Shown one piece after another: positions 24,839 to 41,933 of a stretch of 64,000 nucleotides of DNA. Within the stretch, counting starts at the first letter, position 1; every line of letters begins with the position of its first letter. The notes beneath the pieces were generated by a model. That model was not told where the DNA came from. It did no database searches and saw only the letters and a list, made by a program, of their open reading frames with translations. Both the position numbers and the translations under genes were made by a program. The DNA lies in sequence record PP456877.1, one strand, 5' to 3'.

Positions 24839-26779
24839 ATGAATAAAATGCTAAACTTCCTAAACCGTACGCTATATAGCGGTACTGAAAAAGTATCTTC
24901 AAAAGCTACACCAAGTCTAGAACACTTTAAAACAAATGTTGAACAAGTAGATAAAAAGATTCTACAACCCTTTAGTACTAAATTTAAAACCATTCTAAAA
25001 GAATGTTACAGTAATGAGGAGTGGGTTGAAGAACAATCATTTATTGAAGAACCTATTGATCTTGGTTCAGCTGCACGCGGTCTTACCGAGCGCGGTATTA
25101 TGCGTGGTGATTGGGGACGCTTAGCGCATTCCACTATTAAAGAAGCAGAAGGTATGATGCGTACTTATAGTGGTCGTCTAAATGAAGATATGGAGGCATC
25201 TGAAATTAATGAAGTAATTCAAGATATGCCTTATAACTTCACAGCTGGCTCAGCTAATACTAGCCGTTTAGAAGAAGATGACTCTATTTTTGTTGAAGCA
25301 GATACAACTGTAGTTGAACCTCTGTCTAAGCAGACTCTGCCAAAAGTAGCAGAGCTTACTAATCAATTAGTGGAAGTCTATAACCGAATTACTGAAGAAT
25401 TTACAGAAACTGGTATTGCTAAAGTTGAACAAGTTGAACAGCCAGCAGTTCTTGTAGCACTTGGTGAGATCATTAGTAGTTTTAATAAACTAATTGATTT
25501 ATCTTGCGGTGCTCTACCAGTGGAAGAAACTGTTATTGTAGAGGAGGATCCGTTACCTGCCATTGTCACTGGTCCAACTACTGAACCCATTGATGGTGAA
25601 ATTCTACCGGTTGATGCTATTAATAATTCTGCGGCATTAGAAGAATTCATTGAAGAAGTATTAAGTACTAATCCAGAATTCATTAAATATCAAAGTATGA
25701 ATGATAGTAATATTGATTCATATCTAACTGGGGATGACTGGATTATACTGAAATTCAAAGATGGTTCTTATTATTTATACAATGCCCAAAGTGCCGGTGA
25801 AACGAATATAGAAATCATGAAAGATATGGCCGAAACTGGTAGTGGTCTTAATGGTTTTATAAATCGGGTTATTCGTGGCGGGTATGTAGAGAAGTCCATC
25901 ATTAATACTCCCGGTTTTATACAAGTCTCAAATGAAGGTCTTATCGATTCAATCAAAAAAGTTCTTGGCATTTCTAATCGAGGTGATCAGAAACGTATCT
26001 GGCGTTCATCGTCCAGTGCAAGAGGATTTCTGGAACAACTAGAATCTACATTTGGCAATCCACAATGGCTTAATAAGCAGGTATTCGTTACTGGCGATAT
26101 CAATAGTAATGGTATAGCTAACGTACTGAGTATTAATGGTAAAGTCAGTATCGAGGATGCCATTCGTGCAGTAGAACCATTCTTCAAACTCGAAGAAAAG
26201 TCTAATCGCGAAATGGAGTCTTACAGGCAGAAGACTAAACCTGCATTGGATCTACTCATTAAGAATGCACATAACCTAGACGCTAACGTATACAAAGAAG
26301 CAAAGGCTATCGTAGACAAGGCACGTGCTGGATTCAAGACTAGTGTTAAATGGCCTGCCGGTACTATTACAGGTAAGGGTACCTATAATTCACCTCGCAC
26401 CGTGGTCGCGAAATATCCATCTACTGATAGTAAACTCAAAGCTCTTACTGAAGAAGAAGCAGCTAAGGCCATGAACTTAATTATATCGGCATTGGAACGT
26501 CAGATAACTCTTAGCTTCAAGTTCCCTGATTTACCAGATCCACTGGAAGGACTAATCTACGATATGTTGGATAACCCTAGTCCAATAGCTGGTATCGATT
26601 ACTATGATTGGAATGATTTGTTATTCGCATGCTTTGGCCCTGGGATTGATGATGATGTGATGGAAGTTAATAAAATGCGGCAATACCACTCATTCATTGA
26701 TATCATGGAGGCCGCCGCAAAATGGGTAGATCGGTCTATAAAAGGTAGGTTAGCAATGGGTAATGAAAACTACCAGTAA
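24839..26779 (+). CDS. Virion head protein (phiKZ gp303-like) with acidic propeptide and KTSC-like domain
   Basis: 646 aa; acidic N-half; SNEGL motif; IILKFKDGSYYLY...GSGLNGFINR. Confidence 0.65.
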   Translation: MNKMLNFLNRTLYSGTEKVSSKATPSLEHFKTNVEQVDKKILQPFSTKFKTILKECYSNEEWVEEQSFIEEPIDLGSAARGLTERGIMRGDWGRLAHSTIKEAEGMMRTYSGRLNEDMEASEINEVIQDMPYNFTAGSANTSRLEEDDSIFVEADTTVVEPLSKQTLPKVAELTNQLVEVYNRITEEFTETGIAKVEQVEQPAVLVALGEIISSFNKLIDLSCGALPVEETVIVEEDPLPAIVTGPTTEPIDGEILPVDAINNSAALEEFIEEVLSTNPEFIKYQSMNDSNIDSYLTGDDWIILKFKDGSYYLYNAQSAGETNIEIMKDMAETGSGLNGFINRVIRGGYVEKSIINTPGFIQVSNEGLIDSIKKVLGISNRGDQKRIWRSSSSARGFLEQLESTFGNPQWLNKQVFVTGDINSNGIANVLSINGKVSIEDAIRAVEPFFKLEEKSNREMESYRQKTKPALDLLIKNAHNLDANVYKEAKAIVDKARAGFKTSVKWPAGTITGKGTYNSPRTVVAKYPSTDSKLKALTEEEAAKAMNLIISALERQITLSFKFPDLPDPLEGLIYDMLDNPSPIAGIDYYDWNDLLFACFGPGIDDDVMEVNKMRQYHSFIDIMEAAAKWVDRSIKGRLAMGNENYQ

Positions 26780-26794
26780 TGTATCTAATATTAT

Positions 26795-26935
26795 GTAGAA
26801 ATAATCCCTCCCCCTTGTTTCTACATTAGTCATAATAGATCGGAGCCAGTCCCCCTTCCAACTGGCTCCCAGAGAGTAAAACTCTTTGCTGGGCATTAAT
26901 GACGATATATCGCCTCCCTTCGGGGAGGCTTTATA
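26795..26935 (+). ncRNA. Candidate sRNA with two C-rich loops
   Basis: TATGTA start, three hairpins, UUCG terminator, no ORF. Confidence 0.6.
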
Positions 26936-26992
26936 TTTTGTTTTTACGTATGTATATTAAAATATGTATAAACAACATAGAGTAATTATAAA

Positions 26993-27445
26993 ATGATCAA
27001 AAATGAACTTTTACCAGGGCTAATCTATGCCCAAAAAGAATTTGATAAAATTGCAGCTAATGTAAAAGACTATGATAAGTATAAAAGACGCGAAGCTGGT
27101 AGGGCAAGTGCCGTTTTAAGAAGTCTAGTGAGCAATATTGTAAATCAGAATAAACCATCCTCACTTGAACATGAAGGCAAAGTTAGTACTACTAATACTA
27201 ATGAATATTTAGAAGAAGTTAATAATTACTTCTTTAACATTAATAATATTAAATTAATTTCTCCTAAACTCATAAAAGAGAAATTAACAATTGATCTAAT
27301 GAATATTTATGTTAAATGGAATATGATTGGAGTGGCTGGCCGAAATGATGTTCCAATTATTGAACACAGAATTAATGATTGGTGCGAAGTGACCGATGTC
27401 TACATTAATGGTAATAAGATAACTTCTTTACAATGGCCACGTTGA
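26993..27445 (+). CDS. Hypothetical protein
   Basis: ORF track. Confidence 0.7.
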   Translation: MIKNELLPGLIYAQKEFDKIAANVKDYDKYKRREAGRASAVLRSLVSNIVNQNKPSSLEHEGKVSTTNTNEYLEEVNNYFFNINNIKLISPKLIKEKLTIDLMNIYVKWNMIGVAGRNDVPIIEHRINDWCEVTDVYINGNKITSLQWPR

Positions 27446-27503
27446 ATTTAAAATAAGTTGTAATAAAATACCTAGCAATACATGTTATGTATTGAAGCAC
27501 AAT

Positions 27504-27588
27504 GCCCGAATGGTGAAATTGGTAAACACAGAAGACTTAAAATCTTCCGGCTACGGTCTTGTCGGTTCGAATCCGACTTCGGGCACCA
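27504..27588 (+). tRNA. tRNA-Leu(TAA)
   Basis: Cloverleaf with long variable arm; GAAGA-CTTAAAA-TCTTC; encoded CCA. Confidence 0.96.
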
Positions 27589-27597
27589 ATTTAAATA

Positions 27598-27673
27598 CGG
27601 AGTGTAGCGCAGTTGGTAGCGCGCCTGCTTTGGGAGCAGGATGTCGGGAGTTCGAGTCTCCCCACTCCGACCA
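27598..27673 (+). tRNA. tRNA-Pro(TGG)
   Basis: CCTGC-TTTGGGA-GCAGG anticodon arm; CCA. Confidence 0.96.
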
Positions 27674-27694
27674 TTTTAATAATAGGTAAATAGG

Positions 27695-27988
27695 ATGGAT
27701 AATAAATGGATATCATGGGAACATCAAATTATAGGAACAGCTCTTTACGCTATTCTTAGTGACCCTGAATTAACTAATATTCAATTAGCTCAAGGCTTAC
27801 ACTATCTAACAGAAGCAAAGTCTTCTGTATTACATGTTTGTAATAACCATATTACATTCACTGTAACCTATCCACATGGCACATTTAGAACCAATGTAAT
27901 TAGAGAGTGCCCTGCTAGTGATACAAATACATTCAAATGGTCAGGTGTATTAGTCCGTCAAAAAGATGGAACATTCTTACCAGAATAA
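27695..27988 (+). CDS. Hypothetical protein
   Basis: ORF track; lies between tRNAs. Confidence 0.7.
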   Translation: MDNKWISWEHQIIGTALYAILSDPELTNIQLAQGLHYLTEAKSSVLHVCNNHITFTVTYPHGTFRTNVIRECPASDTNTFKWSGVLVRQKDGTFLPE

Positions 27989-27995
27989 ATAAAAA

Positions 27996-28072
27996 GGGCC
28001 TATAGCTCAGTTGGTTAGAGCAGGCGACTCATAATCGCTTGGTCGCAGGTTCAAGTCCTGCTGGGCCCACCA
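27996..28072 (+). tRNA. tRNA with CAT anticodon, Ile2-type (lysidine) rather than Met
   Basis: GCAGGCGACTCATAATCGCTTGGTCGC core closely resembles enterobacterial tRNA-Ile2; CCA. Confidence 0.85.
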
Positions 28073-28088
28073 TATACTAGCCTCCCAC

Positions 28089-28346
28089 TTGGGGGAGGTT
28101 TTATACTGTCTCATTGAGGAAAACATGAATACAGTAATAATGTTGGTATTATCTATCAAAGTTGGATTATTTGGTTTCATTTCGACTAATGAAAGTAATA
28201 TCCTATTTGAAAATAGGGAACAGTGTATTTCTCATCTGGATATTCTGGAACATAAATACAAGTCTCTTGAAGTTATTCGAAATGAGAATACTCTAAAGAT
28301 AACCGAAAGAGATAACCATTCTATTTATATTTTTAAATGTCTCTAG
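28089..28346 (+). CDS. Small exported/membrane protein (start likely MNTVIML)
   Basis: GAGGA RBS before internal ATG; hydrophobic N-terminus. Confidence 0.65.
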   Translation: MGEVLYCLIEENMNTVIMLVLSIKVGLFGFISTNESNILFENREQCISHLDILEHKYKSLEVIRNENTLKITERDNHSIYIFKCL

Positions 28347-28642
28347 GAAAATACATGGAACATCAAGAACAAAAAGAACTATTGAGACAACCATTACAAA
28401 CACTTTATAATCTTACTTTTAGTCCCCGTTTACGTAATGGAGCGAAGGCTCCCGATTGGATTCACCTGACCGATGAAGTAACCCTATTCCCAAACGGATT
28501 AGATATTACAATCAACGCTGTTACACGTTGCATCAAATGGGAACTTATCGGCGAGGATGTAAGTAACATTACTTATGTTGAAGCTATGTTCTTTAATAAA
28601 GGTCTTAAAGCAGTTAAAGCCTATCTCAAACATACGGAGTAA
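28337..28642 (+). CDS. Hypothetical protein
   Basis: ORF track. Confidence 0.7.
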   Translation: MSLGKYMEHQEQKELLRQPLQTLYNLTFSPRLRNGAKAPDWIHLTDEVTLFPNGLDITINAVTRCIKWELIGEDVSNITYVEAMFFNKGLKAVKAYLKHTE

Positions 28643-28644
28643 AT

Positions 28645-28992
28645 ATGGATCATCTAACCCCAACGCAGAGCGCTGTATATTTCACATTTATTAGCCCTGA
28701 GTTTATAAAGCTAACTCTTGTTGAATCTTTTGTAGCGATCCACAAGAAACATCCAGAAGTAAAGCATTGCGTTAAGAAAAAGATTAGTGCTAATGAAACG
28801 CAGTTTATCTTTATCTTCAAAGATGGGACTGATAATTTAATCATTACACGTAAAACTGAACCTTGCCCTGAACTGGATAGCCCAGTAGGCGATAGTATTA
28901 AGTTGTCCGGCGAAGAACTTAAAAATATTCTTGCTAAGTACGATCGTCCCAAGGATGGTAACTATTTCAAGCACTGGACTGATCGCCCGTAA
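28645..28992 (+). CDS. Hypothetical protein
   Basis: ORF track; GGAG RBS. Confidence 0.75.
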   Translation: MDHLTPTQSAVYFTFISPEFIKLTLVESFVAIHKKHPEVKHCVKKKISANETQFIFIFKDGTDNLIITRKTEPCPELDSPVGDSIKLSGEELKNILAKYDRPKDGNYFKHWTDRP

Positions 28993-29044
28993 TAAAATAT
29001 TACTGGTTATGTAATACTATGTAGGAAGTCATGTCCATACGTTT

Positions 29045-29121
29045 GCGCTCATAGTTCAGTTGGTTAGAATACCCGCCTGTCACGCGGGTGGTCAGGGGTT
29101 CGAGTCCCCTTGGGCGCGCCA
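29045..29121 (+). tRNA. tRNA-Asp(GTC)
   Basis: CCCGC-CTGTCAC-GCGGG; CCA. Confidence 0.96.
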
Positions 29122-29127
29122 TTTAAT

Positions 29128-29203
<76 letters not shown>

Positions 29204-29287
29204 TATTCTAAAGAGTAGCTTCGGCTACTCTTTTATGTTGCCATGGGTTATCTTATGAATTAAAATGATTTACTTGAGAGCACACTC

Positions 29288-30301
29288 ATGTTTGAATTAC
29301 TATTAGCAACTAGTGGTAAAATAAAGCCAGTTGAATTAGTACAATATATCGGTTATGAAAAAATAGCTGACCTGGATATTCCGTTACATGGTTCTATCCC
29401 TTATATTTGGAACGATAAACTATTCGTTAAGGGTGGCGGTACAGATGTTAGTTCTAGTGATCCAGGATTACGCAGGTTTAAATTAGATGGTACGTTTGAG
29501 AATAATAAGAATTTAAGCAACTACATCTATCATACGAATCCAGCGCAAGACTCACGAACTGGTAGAGTTTATTTAATCAACGGTAGGTCTAATGGTAGCT
29601 GGAGTTCTAGCGTGGTCCATGCCATAGATGCTTCTGCGGAGACTATAACTAATCTTGGTTGGAGCACTCCTCGTGGGAACTATGGTAACTCCACGGTATT
29701 TGACGAAGATAACAACAGAATTTACGTCCAATTCCACGATAGTAATCAGTTCGGTTATTACACAACCGATGGCGTCTATCATAACAGCCCGAAAGGCTTT
29801 CCTGCTGCTAGTCTAAGTGGTGCTTTTATATTCAAACATAAAGGCTACATTTACGTGATGGGTGGATGGGGATCCAGTGTTGCATCAAATCCGGATCACC
29901 TGGCGAAATTCGATGCTGGGACAGCAATGACGACAATCATGAGAATGTCGATTTATACACAATTGTGGGAAGTGTACGATATATTACCTACCGAATACCA
30001 TGGTGGTAACCAGGGCGCCGGTAACTACCATGAAGGTATCTTCAGCTATATTAGCTGGAGTGGTAGTAAACTCGGTGCGGTTCGCTATGATGTGTCTGGT
30101 AAAAGATTTATTCGTTTTGATACGGGTATTAGCTATCGCAACGCGACCGGTGTGGTTGGTAATAAAGGAGAGCTGTATCTGGTTGGTGGATGTTCAATTC
30201 CGTTGGGCTCGACTAACCCACCGTTCGGTAGAAAGGCAGAAACGAAGACAGAAATATACAAGTTCATCCTTCCTGCTCCACTACCACCAAGTGATAAGTA
30301 G
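29288..30301 (+). CDS. Kelch-repeat beta-propeller protein 1
   Basis: LFVKGG, YIYVMGGW, LYLVGG repeats; MFELLL N-terminus. Confidence 0.8.
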   Translation: MFELLLATSGKIKPVELVQYIGYEKIADLDIPLHGSIPYIWNDKLFVKGGGTDVSSSDPGLRRFKLDGTFENNKNLSNYIYHTNPAQDSRTGRVYLINGRSNGSWSSSVVHAIDASAETITNLGWSTPRGNYGNSTVFDEDNNRIYVQFHDSNQFGYYTTDGVYHNSPKGFPAASLSGAFIFKHKGYIYVMGGWGSSVASNPDHLAKFDAGTAMTTIMRMSIYTQLWEVYDILPTEYHGGNQGAGNYHEGIFSYISWSGSKLGAVRYDVSGKRFIRFDTGISYRNATGVVGNKGELYLVGGCSIPLGSTNPPFGRKAETKTEIYKFILPAPLPPSDK

Positions 30302-30453
30302 GTGTTACGTACACCAATGCTAGAACCTCACAGAGGGGCAGGGTACCTTAGTATTGGTAACAGTCTTTACACCTTATAAAGGCAGCCATTTGGCTGCCTT
30401 TATGCCGTTACCGTTTATCTTATGACTTAACTGTATTACTTGAGAATATACTC

Positions 30454-31461
30454 ATGTTTGAATTACTATTATCGCCAGATATAGGCGAAGAGTTACCCTT
30501 GGTTGGATTTAATGAAATTATTAAATTAGGTGATCTACCTGTAGCGTTAGCTGGTACAATGTCATATGTGGATGGAAATACACTGTATGTTGGATCTGGT
30601 CATCATACTGAAGGACAAACAGCTGCAACTGTGTTCAGACGTTTTACCATATCGCCATTTGCCGATATAGGTGCAACTGCTTCTGGAACATTCTTACCAG
30701 GGGTATCTTTAGGATTTGGGACATTACATAAGAATAACTTTATTGTTTATGGCGGTATTACTGGATGGAACTCGGCTGGTAATGGTGGTACGGGAACATC
30801 TAACTTTATACAACATTTTGATATAGCTACAGGCAATAGGGTTGAGCGATATAGTGGTCCCGTACCACTTTGGGGCACAGCCTCCGCATCAGATGGTAAT
30901 GATCTTATTATGTGTGTTAACCCAGTTGGGGTAAATGCAATGCGGTTAAAACCATCGGGTAAGACATGGCTTAGTGGGCAAGATTATTCAGGTGGTGCTC
31001 GTTCAGGTCAACAGTTATTCTTTTATAATGGTTACTTTTACCATTTTGGTGGTTGGGATAATACAAAGAACATACCTAATCTTGAAGTTTATCGATATAA
31101 TGCAACTACCTTAATATGGGAGCAAACACCTTGGATGATTATACCTGCTGATAAAGGAACAATCTGGCAAGGTAATGGTTATGTAGATGGGGACTATTTT
31201 AATTACCTTAACGCTGTTGATGTCGGCGGTGTAACTAAAATGTTTGCACAACGTTTTAATATTAGGCGCCGGAAATGGGCTGAACCATTTGAACTAGGTA
31301 TCGGATTCCTTAATATTTCATCTATAGCTAAAGGTCCGGATAATAGCATGATCATTGTAGGTGGATCTAAAATGCCAGTTGGTGGTGGAGCATATATGTT
31401 GAAAAGCCAATTGTTATCAGGTATCTATCAGGTAAAACTAGCGCCATTAATCATTGATTAA
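30454..31461 (+). CDS. Kelch-repeat beta-propeller protein 2
   Basis: FIVYGG, FYHFGGW, MIIVGG repeats; MFELLL N-terminus. Confidence 0.8.
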   Translation: MFELLLSPDIGEELPLVGFNEIIKLGDLPVALAGTMSYVDGNTLYVGSGHHTEGQTAATVFRRFTISPFADIGATASGTFLPGVSLGFGTLHKNNFIVYGGITGWNSAGNGGTGTSNFIQHFDIATGNRVERYSGPVPLWGTASASDGNDLIMCVNPVGVNAMRLKPSGKTWLSGQDYSGGARSGQQLFFYNGYFYHFGGWDNTKNIPNLEVYRYNATTLIWEQTPWMIIPADKGTIWQGNGYVDGDYFNYLNAVDVGGVTKMFAQRFNIRRRKWAEPFELGIGFLNISSIAKGPDNSMIIVGGSKMPVGGGAYMLKSQLLSGIYQVKLAPLIID

Positions 31462-31513
31462 AATAATAATATTTATAACTATTTAGATAATTATACTGGC
31501 ACGATGATATTAT

Positions 31514-31625
31514 GTAAGAGTACTATAATAAAGTATTCTTAAATCTATCCACTAAACACACTCGGTGGTAGAACTTATTATAGAGTGTGTCTAAATGCCA
31601 GGGGTTTGCCACCCCTGGTTATATT
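31514..31625 (+). ncRNA. Candidate compact structured RNA (kissing loop plus pseudoknot)
   Basis: TATGTA start; complementary loops ATAATAA / TTATTAT; terminal CCAGGGG/CCCCTGG hairpin. Confidence 0.55.
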
Positions 31626-31745
31626 CATTGTTACTATTATAAATTCATTTATAGATGAGAAAAGGTTTTATCACCTTTTCAAAATCGGCATTTAATTCCA
31701 GTTAAAAAACTGAATCTATGCTACATTGTAATAAAGGAGTCTATT

Positions 31746-32258
31746 ATGACTAACTCTAATCCGTTTGTAAGAACTATTGTAAAGTACCAAGATATCCTAG
31801 ATGCTTTAATTCAAAAAACGAATGAGAACTGGGTTAATTATCGATCTAATTCTATTGGTCATATTGTTATTCGTGAATACAGGACTGTTGGATTATTTGT
31901 AGGTCGGCAATGTGGTAGTACAACTGCATTGATTGAGTTTGCTAATCGTCACCCTGGCGAATGTCTAGCTGTATTTGTAGAAGATAAAATTAAACAGGCT
32001 GTACTGGCTAAGTTCCAGAATGCTAAAGATAATATTGTTTCTTGTTTAATTACACACCAACTCCGCAAATATATTCATCAACCTGAAGAATCATCTATTC
32101 AAAAAGATATTAAAGAAGAATTAATATCGTCTGTAAAATATATTCTTGTTGACAATGCCTCATTTAATCTGAACCTACGCGGTATCACTGATAAAGAATT
32201 TAACCAGTGGGTTGCAGATACTTTTGGTACAGAGGTAATGGTGGTTCGTTTTAGTTAG
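31746..32258 (+). CDS. Hypothetical protein with degenerate P-loop-like motif
   Basis: LFVGRQCGSTT ... ILVDN. Confidence 0.65.
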   Translation: MTNSNPFVRTIVKYQDILDALIQKTNENWVNYRSNSIGHIVIREYRTVGLFVGRQCGSTTALIEFANRHPGECLAVFVEDKIKQAVLAKFQNAKDNIVSCLITHQLRKYIHQPEESSIQKDIKEELISSVKYILVDNASFNLNLRGITDKEFNQWVADTFGTEVMVVRFS

Positions 32259-32419
32259 AATTAGTAACTTTGATAGTTTCTAATAAGATTAACTACACGT
32301 TATTTACATAATGTCATAACAAGAAATAAATAATACTCAGATTGTAATAATATGTAGTTATTACATATCTATATTAGGTTGTCAGTAACTCATCTCTAAT
32401 ATAAAATCGCCATAATTCT

Positions 32420-32495
<76 letters not shown>

Positions 32496-32626
32496 ATTCA
32501 TAGTTTTAGATTTAGTTATATTTCACTACTATGTAAACTATAAAGGCAGCATTAGCTGCCTTTATGTCGTCTTGTAAAAGTACCCAGTAGTTGAATCTTA
32601 TAGCTGAATACAAATAGGGTAAAGAC

Positions 32627-32812
32627 ATGTCACTTAAAGCATTGCAAGATATAGTTAGTAGTGTTCCTACAAATGAACAAAAGGAACGATTAGTTAAAGT
32701 TCGGAAAACGATGGAAGAGCTAAATGAGTCTATTAAGAATCAGATTCGTAATAAACGACCTAGTCAAGCTCTTCTCGACAAAACGATAAACTGGGGTACC
32801 AAGTATGGCTAA
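32627..32812 (+). CDS. Small coiled-coil protein
   Basis: ORF track. Confidence 0.65.
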   Translation: MSLKALQDIVSSVPTNEQKERLVKVRKTMEELNESIKNQIRNKRPSQALLDKTINWGTKYG

Positions 32813-33095
32813 GACATTAGTTCGTGCAAAGCTGATTACCGAAGCTGGTCAATGGATGTCGTCTGACTGGGAATGTGGTTTCCGTGCATGTCGATTCGTG
32901 AAACTTGGTAATGATCATGTAAACATAAAAGACTTTGAGGCTATGATCACGGCATTCGAAGTTGGTGACATGTTAGTGATTTGGCCAAATGGGCTTAGAA
33001 CTTCGTATAGTGTGGATAATTTCAATAAGTACTTTTCCCATATCAAAGATGAATACCATGAGACTGATCTCCGTCCACTCTTTTACCCCAAGTAG
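32805..33095 (+). CDS. Hypothetical protein
   Basis: ORF track; overlaps upstream stop. Confidence 0.7.
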   Translation: MAKTLVRAKLITEAGQWMSSDWECGFRACRFVKLGNDHVNIKDFEAMITAFEVGDMLVIWPNGLRTSYSVDNFNKYFSHIKDEYHETDLRPLFYPK

Positions 33096-33566
33096 TTGAG
33101 CTTATGATAACTATATTCGTGTATAAATACATTACATTCGTTATACCCTTTAATTGATTGAAATCAAGCTACATAAAAGTGATTGAATGGTCCATGTAGG
33201 TGATAATTTTAATAAAGGTAAAGGATTTATCAGAGAATATCTCAGTGCATTTAGGTATTTTATCACTCGCCTATCTAAATCACATAAAGCCCTTTACCGA
33301 GGAATGTGAGAATGTTGGTTGCGATTGATAATACTGGGACATAATATGATGTCGACCCAACTGATGAAGTAGACGTAATGTTTGTATTTAGACCCACACT
33401 AAAATAACTTTATATGACTTAATACCCCTCTATATAGAGTGGTCTATTTATAAGTAAAATTATACATAGAGTTAATATTATTTGTAGATTAGTTCTACAC
33501 ATAACTCAACTTGAAACCGGGTGTTAATAAAATTTAACACTACGGAAAACATAAAGGTGTATAAAA

Positions 33567-34196
33567 ATGGCTTTTCATTTTACTGAAGTAGATTTAAATG
33601 ATTTTATCAATGAATCAGGTAAAGACTTAAAAATAAATGTTGGTAAACAAACACTAGCAGTTTATGATATCGATAGGCTAAATATTGTTAATTCAACTAT
33701 TAATAAACTAGTTTATAATGAACCTATAAGTGAAGAACACATAGATGCATCACTTACAGATAATTCATTAAAAGAGCTTAATGATTATTTACTAAATGTT
33801 GGTGTTACTGAAAGCGCTAAAATGATGATTGATGCTGTGTTAGAATTAAGCGATTATCATAAAAGTGATGAATACTTTAACCCAATGATGTATAAATTAA
33901 AAAGTATGCACACTAAAAATACAGATGGTGTTTATTTGATATTTTTACCAACGCCTACTATCGATGATCAAATTAACACCATGCAAGGGTATATTATCAA
34001 TAAATCCGGTAATCTCATTAGGACTACTGTACAGTCATGGCGATTTGAGAAAATTGAATTCAAAGACTTAGCCAAACATGATAGACGTTGGTTATTTATT
34101 GAATATTACATTAATGTTAAACAAACGAAAAATAATATAATCAAAGAGCAACAAGATGAATTAACTAAATTTATTTATTATAGTACTCTAAGTTAA
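33567..34196 (+). CDS. Hypothetical protein
   Basis: ORF track. Confidence 0.7.
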   Translation: MAFHFTEVDLNDFINESGKDLKINVGKQTLAVYDIDRLNIVNSTINKLVYNEPISEEHIDASLTDNSLKELNDYLLNVGVTESAKMMIDAVLELSDYHKSDEYFNPMMYKLKSMHTKNTDGVYLIFLPTPTIDDQINTMQGYIINKSGNLIRTTVQSWRFEKIEFKDLAKHDRRWLFIEYYINVKQTKNNIIKEQQDELTKFIYYSTLS

Positions 34197-34252
34197 AACA
34201 AATAAAAAATAAATATAAGAGCTAGCCCCTAATGGGCTAGCTTTATGTTATC

Positions 34253-34390
34253 TTACTCTGCTACATCTTTTACATCAGGTTTATTATTCCAACGTACTGC
34301 TCTCGCAATACCATACGTAAGAATAAGAGCACCCACGGTGCCAATAGTGGTGCTAATAATAATGCCAAGAGTTTTTGGATCAATATTCAT
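34253..34390 (-). CDS. Small single-TM early protein missing from track (45 aa)
   Basis: MNIDPKTLGIIISTTIGTVGALILTYGIAR...; AGGA RBS; own early promoter; hairpin downstream. Confidence 0.65.
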   Translation of the reverse strand: MNIDPKTLGIIISTTIGTVGALILTYGIARAVRWNNKPDVKDVAE

Positions 34391-34437
34391 ATTTAGTATC
34401 CTATTTACAATTAATAGAAAATATTACTTTTAGTAAT

Positions 34438-34476
34438 ATCACATTTGTAATATACCTTTTAAATAGGTTTGAATAT
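34438..34476 (-). promoter_or_regulatory. Early promoter
   Basis: TATTCAAACCTATTTAAAAGGTATATTACAAATGTG. Confidence 0.85.
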
Positions 34477-34538
34477 AACTTTATTTATTATAATAAATTA
34501 AAATAATACTTTCATATACACTATATGTAGAAGATTAC

Positions 34539-34615
34539 GCCGCTATAGCTCAGCTAGGTAGAGCAACGCACTTGTAATGCGTAGGTCCTCCGTTCGATTC
34601 GGAGTGGCGGCACCA
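34539..34615 (+). tRNA. tRNA-Thr(TGT)
   Basis: ACGCA-CTTGTAA-TGCGT; CCA. Confidence 0.96.
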
Positions 34616-34744
34616 AATTTACTGAGGTTTAAACTATTCTTAAATATATTAGTTAGGATGGGATTGAACGTGAAAGACTCAGTAAATCATATTGCCCCTC
34701 CATATGGAGGGGCTTATGTTTGTCATTAATCAGGAAAATATAAA

Positions 34745-34921
34745 ATGAGTCATCTATTATTTATCATCCAAGAATATATTACTAATAAATTTGAGATAAC
34801 ACGAATTGACATGAAGACAGGCAATAGAATGTTACGTGTATGTGTATACGGTCAACATGATGGAAAAGGTTTCGTCCGTGTAGATTTATGGTCAGTTGGT
34901 TATCGTATTACAAAGAAATAA
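34745..34921 (+). CDS. Small ORF missing from track (58 aa, MSHLLFIIQEY...)
   Basis: Hand translation; AGGA RBS. Confidence 0.6.
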   Translation: MSHLLFIIQEYITNKFEITRIDMKTGNRMLRVCVYGQHDGKGFVRVDLWSVGYRITKK

Positions 34922-34963
34922 TACTCCAGATTATTTAATATGTATTGATCAAAGGAGTTTATA

Positions 34964-35374
34964 ATGAGTAATGAAACTAACTATCTAGGTTATGAATGGA
35001 AAACAGATATAACTACTTCAAATCTTAATAGAGTAGTTGATTTATATACACTTGAATTAGCATGGCTAAAAGAAGATTTTAATGATACTCTTTTTATAAA
35101 GTCTTATAAAGTGCTAGAGGGTCTATTAGAGGAACCGTCTAGGGCAATCCATGATGATACAGTACCCATTCAAGATCAATTAGATGAATTAAATACTGTT
35201 TTTAAATTAGTATTTGGGAAAGATAATGATGTAGAGTTATCAATTAATAATGATTCAATTATTGTAATCGGCACCACAGATGCAACTAAAGAAAAGTTAG
35301 AGGTAGAGGTGCGTGAGTTTGCATATAGAAAATCATTAATTGATGAACGTTATCCAGACATTGTAACGGATTAA
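34964..35374 (+). CDS. Hypothetical protein
   Basis: ORF track; AGGAG RBS. Confidence 0.75.
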   Translation: MSNETNYLGYEWKTDITTSNLNRVVDLYTLELAWLKEDFNDTLFIKSYKVLEGLLEEPSRAIHDDTVPIQDQLDELNTVFKLVFGKDNDVELSINNDSIIVIGTTDATKEKLEVEVREFAYRKSLIDERYPDIVTD

Positions 35375-35454
35375 AATACTTACAGCTATCTAGTATGTAA
35401 CTAGGCGGATTGCCATTTGTAAATTATCTATTTAATCGAACTGAGGAAATACTA

Positions 35455-35844
35455 ATGAAACAATTCTTTCAACTACTTCTAAGCCTACTTTTCAAACTAC
35501 CGGTTCTATCATATTTTGCTGAGAAGAAACGATTAGAGAAAGAGAAAAAGGAAGAAGAAAAGCGTCAGCAAGAACAACGTCAAAAAGAACTACTTGATGA
35601 ACAACGTCGCGAACTAGAAGATCATTATCGAAAGACGGCTTACGATCGCCTAGCAAAACTTATTCATACTCGGTGGTATGATGAGTTTAATGCATACGAA
35701 AAGAAACTAGTTGATCTTGCTGTATCGAGTGGTAAAGCAGTTAGTGTTAAGTATGGTAAAGTTACTAAGATGCAGCACCCTCATCAATTTAAACTACTTA
35801 ATGATTGGCTGGATGATATTCCAGTAGAAGATTATTCTAAGTGA
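35455..35844 (+). CDS. Membrane-anchored coiled-coil protein
   Basis: MKQFFQLLLSLLF start with GAGGA RBS; TATGTA motif upstream. Confidence 0.7.
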   Translation: MKQFFQLLLSLLFKLPVLSYFAEKKRLEKEKKEEEKRQQEQRQKELLDEQRRELEDHYRKTAYDRLAKLIHTRWYDEFNAYEKKLVDLAVSSGKAVSVKYGKVTKMQHPHQFKLLNDWLDDIPVEDYSK

Positions 35845-35906
35845 GTTTAAATAAAAGAAAATAAAGACATAGCCCCTCTCCATGTGGAGAGGGGTTTATG
35901 CCGTAA

Positions 35907-36587
35907 TTATACACTTACTTTGATAAGATTTTTAATATCAGTAAAATGGGTATATGTTGCCTTTTTATCTTTGTGAACCAGTAAGCAACAGGTACCTTCA
36001 TTTACTGTATTGGTTTGTTTTAATGGGATATTTAAAGCATATTCAAACAGATCATCCATCCAGTTAAATACCATGAACTTATTGATAAGGACATGATCGA
36101 AATCAATTAATCCAATAAACGAATCGATCTCAGATTGATAATACTCTACAACCATTTTAGACCATTCTTTGTTTATCGCCTCAATGACATTAGGATTATT
36201 TATTTTATTAAATAACTCAATACGTTCCTGAGTAGGTAAACTGAGGTAATAATTAATATTACTCCTAACGATATCTGGATTAGTGATATCCATTTTTTCT
36301 GGTAAGTTATATTTACTATCTACATAATTCTTAGTTTCTGGTGTCATTCTCCAGCAACCATAATCAGCAGTAGTACTTGATGGATCTATTTTAGTCTCCA
36401 CTACTTTAGAAAATACATCTACATATAAATTAACAGATTCGTATACATCAGGTCTGATTGGATTAAAGTTTAAACTTTTAATAAGACCCCTAACTGGCCG
36501 AGTACCAATTAGACAATGCAATTCAAGCTTAACATTTTCCTCTTTAGCCATCTTAAATATATCAGCAAAACTGAGCTTTTCTGCCAT
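35907..36587 (-). CDS. Hypothetical protein
   Basis: ORF track. Confidence 0.7.
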   Translation of the reverse strand: MAEKLSFADIFKMAKEENVKLELHCLIGTRPVRGLIKSLNFNPIRPDVYESVNLYVDVFSKVVETKIDPSSTTADYGCWRMTPETKNYVDSKYNLPEKMDITNPDIVRSNINYYLSLPTQERIELFNKINNPNVIEAINKEWSKMVVEYYQSEIDSFIGLIDFDHVLINKFMVFNWMDDLFEYALNIPLKQTNTVNEGTCCLLVHKDKKATYTHFTDIKNLIKVSV

Positions 36588-36737
36588 TTAGAATATACCT
36601 TTTATTAATTGGACAAATAGATTAGATACACATAGCAATAGAATAAACCATAAACCTAGTCTTTGTAATTTATCTATACGCTTAGCTTTTTGTTTCCTCT
36701 TTAATCTAACTAATAATGTATTTTTAATATCATTCAT
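36588..36737 (-). CDS. Small basic single-TM protein missing from track (49 aa)
   Basis: MNDIKNTLLVRLKRKQKAKR...LGLWFILLLCVSNLF; stop abuts next start. Confidence 0.55.
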   Translation of the reverse strand: MNDIKNTLLVRLKRKQKAKRIDKLQRLGLWFILLLCVSNLFVQLIKGIF

Positions 36738-36755
36738 TAAATTATCTCAGATTTT

Positions 36756-37286
36756 TTAGACGGTGTATAAACCCTCAGTATTACATGTTGTTATGATATT
36801 GTAAAGACGATGCCAATAGCGATCATACGTATTTTTACGTTTGTAGCTATTGGTGCGGATGACTAGATTGGCGACCCAGTGATTCTGATCAATGGTCTCA
36901 TGTAGATGCCCGAAATAAGCCCCCAGTTCAATTTCGAATGGGATCTTACACTCACGCCCCTTACACATTGCTACACGCAATAAACGCATTGCAGAATTCT
37001 CTGCATTGGTATCTTTAAATAAAAGACTAATGTATCCAGGGCTACCACCAGTTTCTTCATCAACATGGCCTGAACAGCAATAAATAGTTGCAACATTGGT
37101 AAATTGATTAAACCATTTAATTAATGGCCTACATGCTTCATCAATAAGATCTTCATATTCAGGTTTATACATTACTTTAACAGTATCATCTGCACGTTGT
37201 TTCACATGATGAAAATATTGCTCCCAATTTACATTAGTGTAATATAGCATATCCATATTAGAATTACTCATACAAATCAACCCCAT
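36756..37286 (-). CDS. Tyw3-like protein
   Basis: IDEACRPLIKWFNQF..VATIYCCSGH..GYISL resembles the TYW3 TxSSCSGR region. Confidence 0.5.
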   Translation of the reverse strand: MGLICMSNSNMDMLYYTNVNWEQYFHHVKQRADDTVKVMYKPEYEDLIDEACRPLIKWFNQFTNVATIYCCSGHVDEETGGSPGYISLLFKDTNAENSAMRLLRVAMCKGRECKIPFEIELGAYFGHLHETIDQNHWVANLVIRTNSYKRKNTYDRYWHRLYNIITTCNTEGLYTV

Positions 37287-38008
37287 ATGTTATTGGCATA
37301 TTCGCGGTCATTGAAAATGCGGGTAAGATCCATCCGCTTTTGAATGCGCGCTAGTATCCATTTTAGTTGTTTAGTTGATAGTTCTTGATTTTGCTTGTAT
37401 TCACCTGTAGCATGGATGTAATAATCAAATTTACGACTTACAGTAGTAGTATGTGCACATGCAATAGCAAATGCTTCAAGTGCAGTTAGTTTGGTTGATC
37501 CATTATCATTACAATTAGGGATAAACTCAAGTACACTATTAACTGCATCTACACCACTACCCAAATGAGCCCAATCTTTCTTGGTGATGTTGATACCCAT
37601 GTCTTTAAGAATAACTGTATATATGTCACCATTCTCCATAGTGAACATCATAGAAGTATTACCATTAAACAACCTGCGTTCTATGACTGGCAAGATATTT
37701 ACTTCAACTTTAAACCAATCAGCTAAATCAACACCTGCGGTAAGGGCATTCAATAGATCATAAACATTATCTATAGTTCCAGCAAAAGCCATAGTTTTAA
37801 CACGTTTACCTTGCCAAGTAACTGTCGGATGAAAAATTATCTTGTGGCAATCATTGTAATATACATCTACACCTTCAGCTTTAGCAGTTAGATCAATATA
37901 ACCGTTATCTAATACTGGAAGTCGCCCAATGCTATCAGTTGCATTATTCCGCTCAATTAATAGGCAGTCTGCAATCATGACTTTACCATCATTTACGATA
38001 TATGTCAT
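37277..38008 (-). CDS. Ntn-hydrolase (HslV/proteasome-beta-like) protein
   Basis: M-TYIVNDGKVMIAD start after GGAG RBS; FAG, LGSG, ALEAFAIA motifs. Confidence 0.65.
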   Translation of the reverse strand: MTYIVNDGKVMIADCLLIERNNATDSIGRLPVLDNGYIDLTAKAEGVDVYYNDCHKIIFHPTVTWQGKRVKTMAFAGTIDNVYDLLNALTAGVDLADWFKVEVNILPVIERRLFNGNTSMMFTMENGDIYTVILKDMGINITKKDWAHLGSGVDAVNSVLEFIPNCNDNGSTKLTALEAFAIACAHTTTVSRKFDYYIHATGEYKQNQELSTKQLKWILARIQKRMDLTRIFNDREYANNIWG

Positions 38009-38046
38009 TTTCACTCCTTATAATAAAATAAATAGGCTTAAGCGAA

Positions 38047-38447
38047 ATAAAGCCCTCCCGAAGGAGGGCAGGGGTTTAATAGATGGGCATCCCAAAGTCG
38101 GCCAACTTGGAACATACTCGATAATACTGGATCACCAGTATGATCGCCTCCGTCCCTATGGGATAGTTCCACGCCTTACTGCTAAAGGACTAAAGTCTCA
38201 ATAACAAGTCTGACTTATCTTAACTGTGGCACCACCCAACTTGTTAAGATCATCCGGTTTGTGCAGTTTGGTTTTCTACACAGCTAGCGTTTTCACACGC
38301 CGATGTACCCTCAATACGGATACACCACTATTAACACCGTAAGCTCATTAGTATTCAGAATAAGTGGGATCTCGGCGGCACCTTCATTTGCGGACGGGAA
38401 CGCTGAAGGGAGATAGTCCGGGAGATCCCGATTTGGGTATTCTTTAC
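38047..38447 (-). ncRNA. Candidate large (~400 nt) multi-domain structured RNA
   Basis: TATGTA start, paired 5'/3' ends, at least 8 helices including an H-type pseudoknot, UUCG terminator, no credible ORF. Confidence 0.65.
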
Positions 38448-38455
38448 ATATGGTA

Positions 38456-38836
38456 TTACTGCAAGTATTTGTTCCCCGCAGTATAATCACCATTGATCCA
38501 ATTTTTGATTACAACACTGATCCCTTCATTTTCTTTAACGGTAACCCCCAACTCAAGATCGATTGATTGATAAGCTACAGCAGCCAGTGTTAACCGAAGA
38601 TAAACGGATCCATCTTTTTCGATATCGTAGGATACTACGAACCCGTCTTGTAGATTTTGTAGCTGGAATGTATTAGCATGTTGTGGGTGGAGACGATCCA
38701 TATTGTACTCGACGACATCTAGTAGATATTGCCGAGCATCAGCAGCATTATCAAATCCGAGATCGCACAGACCGATCGGATAGCGAGCTTGCGTGCATGT
38801 AACTTTCATAGATACTACACGATGTTGTTTGCACAT
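38456..38836 (-). CDS. Hypothetical protein
   Basis: ORF track; GAGGA RBS. Confidence 0.7.
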   Translation of the reverse strand: MCKQHRVVSMKVTCTQARYPIGLCDLGFDNAADARQYLLDVVEYNMDRLHPQHANTFQLQNLQDGFVVSYDIEKDGSVYLRLTLAAVAYQSIDLELGVTVKENEGISVVIKNWINGDYTAGNKYLQ

Positions 38837-38977
38837 TATATTTTCCTCTTAGATGTCAAAAACCCTCCCCGATCAGGGGAGGGTATCTCATTGGTACTTC
38901 TTCAGCAAAACTGAAACTAAGATAAAAGAGCAATCGTAAAGGAACTACATAGAATAGTGTATTTCTTTTACTATTTT

Positions 38978-40406: not shown

Positions 40407-41933
40407 TTAATATTTCAATAGACTATTGATAAAAGCATTAGGGTCATAACGGTTATTTGAAAAAGCCGCCATTACATCACACCCTGGCTGATCTTTAAAT
40501 CTGATATCTTCAGGAATATCGAAGTCAGGGAACATTAGTTTAATATACTCCCTAACTTCTTGATCTCGTAGATATGGAATCTCCACCATGTAATCAACGC
40601 GACCTTTCCTTAGAAGTGCTTTATCAATATTCTCAGGATGGTTTGTAGTTAGAATGGTCATAGTCTCATCTAGTGGAACAATGCCATCTAGCCCATTTAA
40701 TAGAGCTGACAAAGTTAATCCGCTAGCTGGTTGTTCATACGTGATTCCATTCTTCATGCACTTCTTTAATTTCCACCATCGGCGAATTGTAGTAAATAAT
40801 GGATCTTTTTCATCGGCCCATTTTGAAACACCCAGTTCAGCCATAGCATAAGCACTTATCCCAAAACCTTGATCATCGCTATTTTCATCAAAGATATAGA
40901 TGGTGTCATTAAACCCAACTACAGAGTATCCTTCATAGTCATCTTTAAGATCAACCCATGCAGACGGATATTTTTCAATTAAATCAATAAAAGAATATTT
41001 CCTCTCTAATTCCTTTATCTCTTTATCTAGTTTTACAGGATCATTTAAAACACGATCTTTAACTGCCGGGGTATCATCGAAATCTTCAATTAGAAGAATA
41101 TTACCTTTAGGTAGTGTAGTAAATGCCCGCCTAAGACTATCATTGGTCATAGAGGCTAATGACAGTGCACTAACATTTTTATTAAAATGTGAGGCAATCG
41201 CTTTACTGATTGAGGTTTTACCAGTACCAGGAGGACCTGTTAGAACACAAGTGAATTTATAGGGTAGTCCACGATCATCGTACCATTTCCGATCAGAATA
41301 GAATTCTTCAATCTTATTAAGGAATTCTTCTTTGATCTCTTTACGCAAAATCACCGTGTTGATATCGCGTTTAGTAACTTCAATCTCATTGCCCCAACGG
41401 TTACCATCCCAATGTGAAATAGTCAGACCCCTTTCATTTGGGCGCCAATGGTAAGCATCTACTAAATCAATAATTAGTTTACTACTCCTAGATAATCCAC
41501 GGATAGTAATATCCATTTGATCTCGACTGGCATTTTGACTATCCCGGCGTGCTTTTACAAACCAGAATAACCTACCTTTAAACAGAAAGAAATGTAAGCC
41601 AAAACCAACACCAATTTTCTGTTTAGTTGCACTATAACTTTGCTCATCAACATTAGTTGAAAAACGTCGATTAAATCCAGCTAATGGCTGCTTAATATAC
41701 CATTCCATGAAACAATCAAAGTTCTTCTCGTTCAGCCCATTACCCATGTTGGTAATATGTAGACTAACTGTAAACTGATTTAATGCGAACCTAGCTAGTT
41801 TACTTGGTAAGCCTCTTAGAGTGGTCCAGAATAAACCACCAATTGCCATTCCGATAGCTCCACCCATAACCATATTCTTCTGAGAGATATCGATGAACAT
41901 GGCGTAATATTGCAATAAGGTTTCTATAATCAT
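40407..41933 (-). CDS. Membrane-anchored BCS1-like AAA+ ATPase
   Basis: N-terminal TM; GPPGTGKT; LLIEDFD; LTLSALLNGLDG; TTNHPENIDKALLRKGRVD; RGLPYK. Confidence 0.88.
   Translation of the reverse strand: MIIETLLQYYAMFIDISQKNMVMGGAIGMAIGGLFWTTLRGLPSKLARFALNQFTVSLHITNMGNGLNEKNFDCFMEWYIKQPLAGFNRRFSTNVDEQSYSATKQKIGVGFGLHFFLFKGRLFWFVKARRDSQNASRDQMDITIRGLSRSSKLIIDLVDAYHWRPNERGLTISHWDGNRWGNEIEVTKRDINTVILRKEIKEEFLNKIEEFYSDRKWYDDRGLPYKFTCVLTGPPGTGKTSISKAIASHFNKNVSALSLASMTNDSLRRAFTTLPKGNILLIEDFDDTPAVKDRVLNDPVKLDKEIKELERKYSFIDLIEKYPSAWVDLKDDYEGYSVVGFNDTIYIFDENSDDQGFGISAYAMAELGVSKWADEKDPLFTTIRRWWKLKKCMKNGITYEQPASGLTLSALLNGLDGIVPLDETMTILTTNHPENIDKALLRKGRVDYMVEIPYLRDQEVREYIKLMFPDFDIPEDIRFKDQPGCDVMAAFSNNRYDPNAFINSLLKY

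Follow-up and report, generated by a model that had tools for sequence, protein, structure and literature searches.

A region of a jumbo phage genome in which tRNA genes lie among segments without ORFs, several of both kinds beginning with the same hexamer, TATGTA, raises the question of how such a region is transcribed and what its non-coding segments are. The 64-kb window, that is the whole stretch of DNA analysed here, comes from the start of Pseudomonas phage vB_Pae3705-KEN49 (its first 64 kb; 100% match to PP456877.1, with identical coordinates), a phiKZ-type jumbo phage of the genus Phikzvirus. A preliminary sequence-only reading had noticed TATGTA upstream of tRNA-Leu, tRNA-Asp, the second tRNA-Asn and tRNA-Thr and at the start of three structured segments devoid of ORFs, and had interpreted the region as an RNA island; positions, terminators and folding all agree with this description. 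It is very probable that the region from 26.8 to 39.0 kb is a tRNA and small-RNA island equivalent to phiKZ gp303 to gp288, with the promoter and short-RNA architecture set out below. The word island is a fair one, given that 4 of the 17 phiKZ ncRNA candidates, 9 of the 33 middle promoters and all the tRNAs fall within about 4% of the phiKZ genome (P ~0.006 for the clustering of the candidates, by our own Poisson estimate); the small-RNA/promoter units are 99-100% identical between KEN49 and phiKZ. The core finding, namely TATGTA starts, tRNAs and short structured RNAs, is real but not new, as it belongs to the phiKZ literature of 2014-2024. What is new in KEN49 is an orphan, ORF-free extra segment within one of the units (nc289), present in KEN49 alone.

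The hexamer is found on the plus strand at 26792, 27486, 29008/29018, 31511, 32351 and 34524 and on the minus strand at 38445-38450. Across the whole window it is under-represented (56 occurrences against 82.7 expected) and, at the same time, enriched between genes: 22 of the 56 lie in the intergenic 10.5% of the window, where 9.0 +/- 3.1 were expected and none of 500 shuffles reached 22. In the 3 kb of intergenic DNA of the 26.8-39.0 kb region there are 18, against 3.9 +/- 1.9 expected. The extended motif ATACT-N13-TATGTA has six exact matches (0.15 expected), all of them intergenic and in the orientation of the downstream gene, and all seven matches of TACT-N13-TATG in the window fall within 29.0-38.5 kb.

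From a functional perspective, the phiKZ non-virion RNA polymerase (nvRNAP) uses TATG(TA) as its initiator, with the G as +1 (PMC4666361), in accordance with the background that the sequence-only reading had invoked, and TATG with G as +1 is required for nvRNAP transcription in vitro (PMC4666361, PMC7618050). The middle and late nvRNAP promoters of phiKZ have been described in several works (Ceyssens 2014; Yakunina 2015, PMC4666361; Wicke 2021, PMC8244752; Putzeys 2024, PMC10914365), and its transcription start sites (TSSs) have been mapped by ONT-cappable-seq or dRNA-seq. TSS mapping had been proposed as a check of the reading; when the window motifs are mapped onto phiKZ, the TSSs P144, P141, P140, P138, P137, P134 and P130 lie within about 1 base of the cited TATGTA sites, and the reading is not refuted on this count. 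The window sites are direct homologues of P129-P144, nearly identical in sequence, and share with the phiKZ promoters both TATG with G as +1 and a TACT about 22 nt upstream, after an A-rich sequence; there is no substantive difference, TATGTA being the published four-base core in a more restrictive form. Given the 99-100% identity to phiKZ, KEN49 transcripts would be expected to have their primary 5' ends here too.

The element (A/T)TAC(T/C)-N13-TATGTA occurs at eight window sites, whose phiKZ counterparts all carry the label 'middle'. On the plus strand these are 27468..27491 (ATACC-N13-TATGTA; homologue of P141), 29000..29023 (TTACT-N13-TATGTA; P140), 31493..31516 (ATACT-N13-TATGTA; P138), 32333..32356 (P137), 34506..34529 (P134), 34921..34944 (P133, gp293 homologue) and 35376..35399 (P132, gp292 homologue); the eighth, on the minus strand at 38445..38468 (ATACT-N13-TATGTA; P130), overlaps the stop codon of the gp288 homologue. 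The TAC(T/C) element is missing from three further sites, labelled late, late and early in phiKZ: 26792..26797 (+), homologue of P144, whose G at 26795 corresponds to phiKZ position 274149, next to the published TSS 274148(-); 26963..26968 (+), homologue of P143, before the gp302 homologue (26993-27445); and 38946-38951 (-), homologue of P129. The phage's own nvRNAP would start at the G of TATGTA, and the A-rich sequence ending in ATACT 13 bases upstream of most sites, together with TATGTA, would correspond to the published 'middle' promoter class. Five middle-type promoters would serve the tRNA units, an adjacent mRNA unit and two short RNAs out of the four, while the remaining two short RNAs would begin at TATG promoters of the late and the early class. 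Thus, of the co-regulated suite proposed for this region, the common start motif stands, but not a single regulon (P144 is late, P129 early and the others middle).

Seven tRNAs were identified by both ARAGORN and Rfam between 27504 and 34615, all on the plus strand. tRNA-Leu(TAA) (27504-27588), tRNA-Pro(TGG) (27598-27673), the gp301 homologue (27695-27988) and tRNA-Met(CAT) (27996-28072) form a single unit (27504..28072), closed by a terminator at 28081-28095. They are followed by tRNA-Asp(GTC) (29045-29121), a first copy of tRNA-Asn(GTT) (29128-29203), a second, intact copy of the same sequence (32420..32495) and tRNA-Thr(TGT) (34539..34615), with a terminator at 34694-34713. Counting the G of TATG as +1, the leaders measure 15 nt for Leu, 24 nt for Asp, 66 nt for the second Asn and 12 nt for Thr.

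Four short structured RNAs share the region with these genes. On the plus strand, nc302 (26795..26937, terminator 26912-26929), which doubles as the 3' UTR of the gp303 homologue, corresponds to the 141-nt phiKZ TU237 and to the candidate 5'UTR_PHIKZ302, and nc297 (31514..31625), composed of three hairpins of which the third is the terminator (31597-31619), corresponds to 3'UTR_PHIKZ298 / 5'UTR_PHIKZ297, an RNA of ~110 nt from P138 to T126. On the minus strand, the nc289 unit (38045..38447, terminator 38069-38052) corresponds to TU198 / 5'UTR_PHIKZ289, and nc288, which the earlier reading did not include, consists of a TATGTA and a leader RNA of ~89 nt with a terminator (38859..38951 with the motif; TU196 / 5'UTR_PHIKZ288). 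The predicted KEN49 starts of the four RNAs are 26795, 31514, 38447 and 38948. Compared with shuffled sequences, folding gives z = -6.7 for nc302, -5.6 for nc297 and, for nc289, -3.2 (conserved body) or -4.4 (phiKZ form). The ORFs in the first three segments are small and run through the terminators; CDS0045, 0053, 0068 and 0069 of the GenBank record look like over-calls. Identity to phiKZ is 179/180 for nc302, 149/149 for nc297, 126/127 for the nc289 body and 131/132 for nc288.

These RNAs, regarded by the sequence-only reading as unknown non-tRNA RNAs, are indeed real, but they were already phiKZ ncRNA candidates: all four are in the published candidate table (Table S7) with agreeing coordinates (Gerovac 2021, PMC8545117; Putzeys 2024, PMC10914365). 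In phiKZ, the nc302 and nc297 homologues have been detected by northern blot, and Grad-seq places the gp298/297 RNA in light (low-molecular-weight) fractions, not with ribosomes and apart from mRNAs. Loci, starts and terminators coincide in the two phages, and three of the four RNAs are 99-100% identical in sequence; the difference lies in the PHIKZ289 leader RNA, ~403 nt in KEN49 against 120 nt in phiKZ. nc302, nc297 and nc288 each have their own start, an intrinsic terminator within 250 nt and no internal gene; in KEN49, nc289 has both a start and a terminator, but over ~403 nt.

As for the suspicion that the segments are only read-through UTRs, they are both things at once. Discrete products exist in phiKZ (TU237, 141 nt; P138-T126, 110 nt; TU198, 120 nt), and so do read-through UTRs (TU238, TU197, TU233): short and read-through units share their starts (TU196/197/198, TU233/237/238, TU212/213), and the upstream mRNAs TU238 and TU197 end at the terminators of TU237 and TU198. 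The promoter of each short RNA is proposed to follow the stop codon of the upstream gene and to precede the intrinsic, leaky terminator of the same gene, and it is because of this placement that short RNAs would be made. Polymerases leaving these promoters would mostly stop after 90-140 nt, yielding a stable, structured small RNA, and a fraction would continue past the terminator into the next gene or tRNA unit. Publications on phiKZ document the starts and terminators, both the short and the read-through transcripts, and how abundant two of the RNAs are; for KEN49 they are carried over through sequence identity and so remain predictions.

The extra segment of nc289, ~0.28 kb long, separates the conserved 5' body from the terminator, and its presence is the reason why the unit is longer than in phiKZ. 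It was found in KEN49 only, among 46 phiKZ-type genomes; its ORFs, none of them convincing, are singletons among ~15 billion proteins. It is richer in G+C than the phage, as the tRNAs are, and folds into a closed multi-branch domain (z = -2.9). These features could suggest a self-splicing intron lacking an ORF, or a mobile structured RNA of another type, lodged in a transcribed non-coding gene, the more so as the junctions allow a U as the last base of the upstream flank and a G as that of the segment, and a short hairpin can form between this flank and the segment's first bases. Such an origin is nevertheless very improbable: the 451 bases of the nc289 unit give no credible match (E <= 10) to Rfam models, including group I/II introns and small ribozymes, no match to a group I intron catalytic core was obtained in the segment from the family models at the same threshold, no terminal repeats were found, the U...G boundary rule is weak with ambiguous junctions, and the search for relatives found none anywhere. 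Furthermore, differences from phiKZ extend to the terminator and the flanking linker, a pattern that agrees better with recombination of a patch than with an exact insertion. Most simply, the segment would be a patch recombined in from an unsampled relative, a guess, since no donor was found.

The sequence-only reading had also placed candidate RNA-modifying enzymes at the borders of the island. One of them finds some correspondence in the gp290 homologue (36756..37286, minus strand, 176 aa), for which a fold like that of TYW3 (tRNA-yW N-4 methyltransferase) is predicted; a scan of 30 proteins gave no ART-like and no deaminase domain. Its match to Pfam PF02676 scores 18.3 bits (E = 0.0016), below the cutoff of 27, and three of eight family members match weakly. 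In its AlphaFold model (mean pLDDT 84.8), the nine best Foldseek matches in the PDB are all of the TYW3 family (PH1069, AF_2059, SSO0622), with probabilities of 0.97-1.0 but TM of only 0.40-0.49, and a profile search retrieves PH1069 at E = 0.014 over a Thr/Cys/Gly motif invariant in the family. The host is not known to have a wybutosine pathway.

Among known systems, the short RNAs resemble the Type I 3'UTR-derived small RNAs of bacteria, which act in trans by base pairing, as a rule aided by a chaperone. In this class (reviewed in PMC9438474), as here, transcription starts from a promoter situated at the end of the upstream ORF or beyond it and stops at a terminator shared with the upstream mRNA, and the product is a discrete, stable small RNA. 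The phiKZ-type RNAs differ in using a phage polymerase with an initiator-type promoter and in doubling as the leader of the downstream unit, and no Hfq dependence or target is known for them. Abundant, structured non-tRNA RNAs also adjoin the tRNA region of phage PAK_P3 (ncRNA1 and ncRNA2); these have no sequence similarity to the RNAs described here and, unlike them, arise by processing, having no TSS of their own. The tRNA cluster of T4 likewise encodes two stable RNAs, which are abundant, structured and next to phage tRNA genes, again without sequence similarity.

Conservation bears on whether the short RNAs do anything on their own. nc302 has three variable positions between variable, unrelated flanks, with one A-U to G-C compensatory pair, and in nc297 all sequences preserve 31 of the 32 predicted pairs, with two compensatory pairs, both in helix 1, across lineages that are only ~84% identical and have flanks too diverged to align well; 4-5 sequences underlie the covariation. 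In phage U1B the nc289 body has three changes in ~88 nt, the flanking genes being 83% identical, and its terminator has changed by compensation. It is possible to see the segments as functionless by-products, that is plain 3' UTRs and terminators of gp303, gp298 and gp288 upstream of which the promoter of the next unit has come to lie by chance: upstream mRNAs share these terminators (TU238, TU197), the same promoters read into downstream genes (TU233, TU212), and the four RNAs, compared with each other, have no common sequence or structure except the terminators. This remains doubtful, as the bodies are far better conserved than the flanks, helices are kept through compensatory changes, folding is much better than in shuffled sequence even upstream of the terminator, and the phiKZ candidates cluster as described above. 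Part of the near-invariance could, however, be due to recent shared ancestry of the blocks rather than to selection.

At the other extreme, the RNAs might be trans-acting regulators that base-pair with mRNAs of the host or the phage, or bind and titrate a host RNA-binding protein, in translation takeover or counter-defence. In agreement with this, they are abundant and discrete, the gp298/297 RNA sediments separately from mRNAs, conservation exceeds what a terminator needs and extends to unpaired stretches, and the RNAs adjoin tRNAs and the protein with the TYW3-like fold. Still, such a role appears unlikely. When duplexes were computed with 75 translation-initiation regions and with the phage tRNAs, all from the window, their energies did not surpass those of shuffled controls; the RNAs are unlike one another, only the seven tRNAs pass in Rfam (nothing else credible at E <= 5 over 12.7 kb), and the publications consulted describe no partner or phenotype; the action on translation or counter-defence put forward by the sequence-only reading found no evidence here. 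In the reading preferred here, the near-invariance of the RNAs between variable flanks would imply that they do something beyond spacing, most likely setting the read-through ratio into the downstream genes and tRNA units and/or acting in trans.

The window is the opening 64 kb of the genome of Pseudomonas phage vB_Pae3705-KEN49 (PP456877.1; genus Phikzvirus), as judged from a 6-kb stretch (26700-32700) that is 100% identical to this record with unchanged coordinates. The region studied runs from the homologue of phiKZ gp303 down to that of gp288, on the opposite strand relative to the phiKZ record, and contains seven tRNA genes on which ARAGORN and Rfam agree: Leu-TAA, Pro-TGG, Met-CAT, Asp-GTC, two Asn-GTT and Thr-TGT. 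As the sequence-only reading had proposed, four of the five groups of tRNA genes have the hexamer TATGTA just ahead of them, namely those of tRNA-Leu (27486), tRNA-Asp (29018, with another copy at 29008), tRNA-Asn2 (32351) and tRNA-Thr (34524). The hexamer also heads three stretches with no credible ORF, at 26792, 31511 and, on the minus strand, 38445-38450, each of which is closed by an intrinsic-terminator hairpin. All three fold much more stably than shuffled sequences (z = -6.7 for the small RNA nc302, -5.6 for nc297 and, for nc289, -3.2 for the conserved body and -4.4 for the phiKZ form).

Placement, not frequency, sets TATGTA apart. Over the window as a whole the hexamer is rarer than chance (56 observed vs. 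82.7 expected), while 22 of the 56 copies fall in the intergenic 10.5% of the window (9.0 ± 3.1 expected; no shuffle reaches 22). Between 26.8 and 39.0 kb, 18 copies lie in 3 kb of intergenic DNA (3.9 ± 1.9 expected; again, no shuffle reaches the observed count). The copies are oriented along the direction of transcription, and most possess a second element giving the pattern ATACT-N13-TATGTA, whose six exact matches (0.15 expected) all lie in intergenic DNA and share the orientation of the downstream gene; the looser TACT-N13-TATG has seven matches, all within 29.0-38.5 kb. Sigma-70-type promoters are below shuffled counts, as expected for a phage that makes no use of the host polymerase. At 32530-32565 (plus strand) a copy of TATGTA lies only a few bases ahead of a terminator-like hairpin homologous to phiKZ T125; no phiKZ start is listed at the homologue of this copy, and thus an intergenic TATGTA is not always a start site.

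The phiKZ non-virion RNA polymerase initiates at the G of TATG, all four bases of which are required for transcription in vitro (Yakunina et al., PMC4666361; also PMC7618050). The "middle" motif was described as a TACT some 22 nt ahead of the start, with A-rich sequence before it, and two transcription starts were assigned to phage tRNAs (Wicke et al., PMC8244752). The motifs of the window were mapped to phiKZ coordinates and compared with the table of transcription starts of Putzeys et al. (bioRxiv 10.1101/2023.10.13.562163, supplement; PMC10914365), and all the TATGTA sites compared lie at most one base from a listed start. Two of these are late, at 26792 (P144, ahead of nc302) and 26963 (P143, ahead of the gp302 homologue), and one is early, at 38946 on the minus strand (P129, ahead of the small RNA nc288). 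The middle starts precede tRNA-Leu (27486, P141), tRNA-Asp (29018, P140), nc297 (31511, P138), tRNA-Asn2 (32351, P137), tRNA-Thr (34524, P134), the gp293 homologue (34939, P133), the gp292 homologue (35394, P132) and nc289 (38445, minus strand, P130). The extended pattern fits eight sites, the same eight that are labelled "middle" in phiKZ. TATGTA had rightly been taken for the promoter of the non-virion polymerase. The sequence-only reading was to be abandoned if transcription starts failed to map to these motifs; since the starts match and the units of this region are 99-100% identical to those of phiKZ, the mapping has already been done in phiKZ and does not refute it.

Depending on the strain, the nc302 start is preceded by one of two unrelated versions of the adjoining DNA (26770-26795). 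The version of PA7, SL2, GUMS and Wadjak1 shows the middle-type pattern TTACT-N13-TATG, which is missing from that of KEN49 and phiKZ, where the promoter is classed as late; with two such versions, nc302 may be timed differently in different strains.

The structured RNAs predicted from the sequence are real. They are not unknown, as had been supposed, since all three are published phiKZ ncRNA candidates (Table S7). In particular, nc302 is the 141-nt candidate upstream of PHIKZ302 (TU237), nc297 is the RNA of about 110 nt between PHIKZ298 and PHIKZ297, first detected by Grad-seq (PMC8545117), and nc289 is the 120-nt candidate upstream of PHIKZ289 (TU198); nc302 and nc297 have been confirmed by northern blot in phiKZ. 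The sequence-only reading did not include a fourth such unit, nc288, the 89-nt PHIKZ288 leader (TU196), whose TATGTA lies at 38946-38951 on the minus strand. According to the phiKZ tables, upstream mRNAs share their terminators with the small RNAs (TU238, gp304-303; TU197, gp288), and long read-through units start from the small-RNA promoters (TU233 extends over gp302 and the tRNAs, TU212/213 over gp297 and further). These shared terminators and read-through units place the small-RNA promoter between the stop codon and the terminator of the upstream gene, and it is from a promoter so sited that each small RNA originates. The same RNA is 3' UTR, leader and free RNA in one, an architecture like that of the bacterial "type I" 3' UTR-derived small RNAs, the class to which we presume that these RNAs belong. 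The possibility that they form one family was rejected, as only the terminators are in common. Four GenBank "hypothetical protein" CDS overlie the small RNAs, at 26750-26896 (minus), 31585-31695 (plus), 38038-38172 (minus) and 38311-38493 (minus); they traverse the terminator hairpins and are probably over-calls.

The description of the region as an RNA island is a fair one. In phiKZ, four of the 17 ncRNA candidates and nine of the 33 middle promoters are gathered, together with every tRNA, in some 4% of the genome (about 11.6 kb); Poisson estimates for the clustering are P ~0.006 (candidates) and P ~1e-5 (middle promoters). Within this island, rich in middle promoters, the small RNAs appear to be under constraint. 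In fact, nc302 has only three variable positions across five lineages, whereas its two flanks are substituted by other DNA or contain indels; one of the changes is a compensatory A-U to G-C pair in its first hairpin. Similarly, nc297 is about 84% identical in lineages in which its flanks have become hard to align; all the sequences preserve 31 of the 32 predicted pairs, and two compensatory pairs occur. In phage U1B, where the genes neighboring nc289 are 83% identical, the nc289 body shows three changes in about 88 nt, all at predicted unpaired positions, and the terminator stem is altered by compensation. Given a small sample of closely related phages, these patterns are suggestive, short of proof, that the RNAs are more than by-products.

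The strain-specific novelty lies in nc289, which in KEN49 measures about 403 nt, more than three times the 120 nt of phiKZ, due to an extra segment of about 0.28 kb that separates the terminator from the conserved 5' body. This segment is missing from the other 45 phiKZ-type genomes matching the locus, has a G+C content above that of the phage and folds alone as a closed multi-branch domain (z = -2.9). It contains no convincing ORF, and such ORFs as it has are singletons. No relative was found by blastn in 50,697 phage records or in plasmids, nor with exact probes of IMG/VR (five, of 19-29 nt) and of metagenome and GTDB contigs (one each); the probes are exact words, which relatives below about 90% identity would escape, and the sole matches obtained extend for 19-27 nt and were dismissed as chance.

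As for its origin, the adjoining linker and terminator differ slightly from those of phiKZ, for which a putative recombination patch from an unsampled relative accounts better than a precise insertion. An intron or other mobile RNA is improbable, with no test in its favor, and terminal or inverted repeats of note were not found in the segment. There is a hint, from a colinear gapped alignment with the nc289 body (43.4 vs. 34.3 ± 4.6 in shuffles, 38 of 1000 of which reach it), that the segment could be a diverged and expanded copy of that body; a stricter local alignment of the two was not significant.

A further difference from phiKZ concerns the second tRNA-Asn(GTT) (32420-32495), which in KEN49 is intact and matches the first copy exactly. 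Its homologue in phiKZ and the relatives 6B, 9Ps-7B and 9-Ps-8B is split by a single insertion, on which lie the HNH endonuclease PHIKZ296 and another, distinct tRNA of 87 nt with a long variable arm and likewise a GTT anticodon (Rfam, 53.7 bits). The insertion matches no intron model, and the RefSeq annotation reports only the inner tRNA.

Among the neighbors proposed as RNA-modifying enzymes, only one has support, the gp290 homologue (36756-37286, minus). Its Pfam match to TYW3 is sub-threshold (E = 0.0016; 18.3 bits vs. a cutoff of 27), and a profile of its few relatives matches the Pyrococcus TYW3-family structure PH1069 (E = 0.014) across a motif with family-wide invariant Thr, Cys and Gly. 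Furthermore, the nine best PDB matches of its AlphaFold model (mean pLDDT 84.8) in Foldseek are all TYW3-family, with probabilities of 0.97-1.0 and TM scores of only 0.40-0.49. Together, these data support a TYW3-like fold; membership of the TYW3 family and any tRNA substrate are not supported. The host bacterium is not known to make wybutosine, and such a fold in one of its phages is unexpected. The ART-like and deaminase domains also proposed had no Pfam match in 30 scanned proteins of the window. PHROGs assigned the neighbors to families without an ascribed function, apart from a weak match of the gp289 homologue (37277-38008, minus), downstream of the enlarged nc289 unit, to the HslV-family peptidases (E = 5e-5); this homologue has no Pfam or PDB sequence match. 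The gp286 homologue (40407-41933, minus) is a BCS1-like AAA+ ATPase (BCS1_N 3e-11, AAA 1.5e-16). The virion structural protein gp298 (30454-31461) has a divergent paralogue (24% identity, E = 2e-10; one PHROG family) in the adjoining ORF of 337 aa (29288-30301, plus), which is missing from phiKZ and common to phages pPA-N1803-4At.2 and Wadjak 2.

A role of the small RNAs in translation or counter-defence, as first suggested, has no support yet: the RNAs are unrelated to one another, Rfam at both gathering and permissive thresholds recovered only the tRNAs and gave the small RNAs no family, and the duplexes predicted with 75 translation-initiation regions and with six tRNAs did not exceed shuffled controls. 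Weak Rfam matches were discarded, with Plastid-ycf2, SpF41 and YrlA overlapping tRNAs, mostly read on the opposite strand, and rnk_pseudo covering a terminator only.

A real jumbo-phage promoter class and real small RNAs are thus recoverable from sequence alone; both are already described in the phiKZ literature, to which little is added. What is of interest is the occurrence, among the phage tRNAs, of four near-invariant small RNAs, two of which have been shown to be abundant in phiKZ, beside a protein of TYW3-like fold. We consider it improbable that the four, the KEN49 form included, act in trans with the tRNAs and this protein, reprogramming translation or blunting tRNA- or RNA-directed defence, and that the KEN49 segment is at the same time a newly acquired structured RNA module; were this true, the module would be of a kind not yet described. 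The KEN49 nc289 is a natural variant and offers a ready comparison with the phiKZ form for studies of expression and structure.
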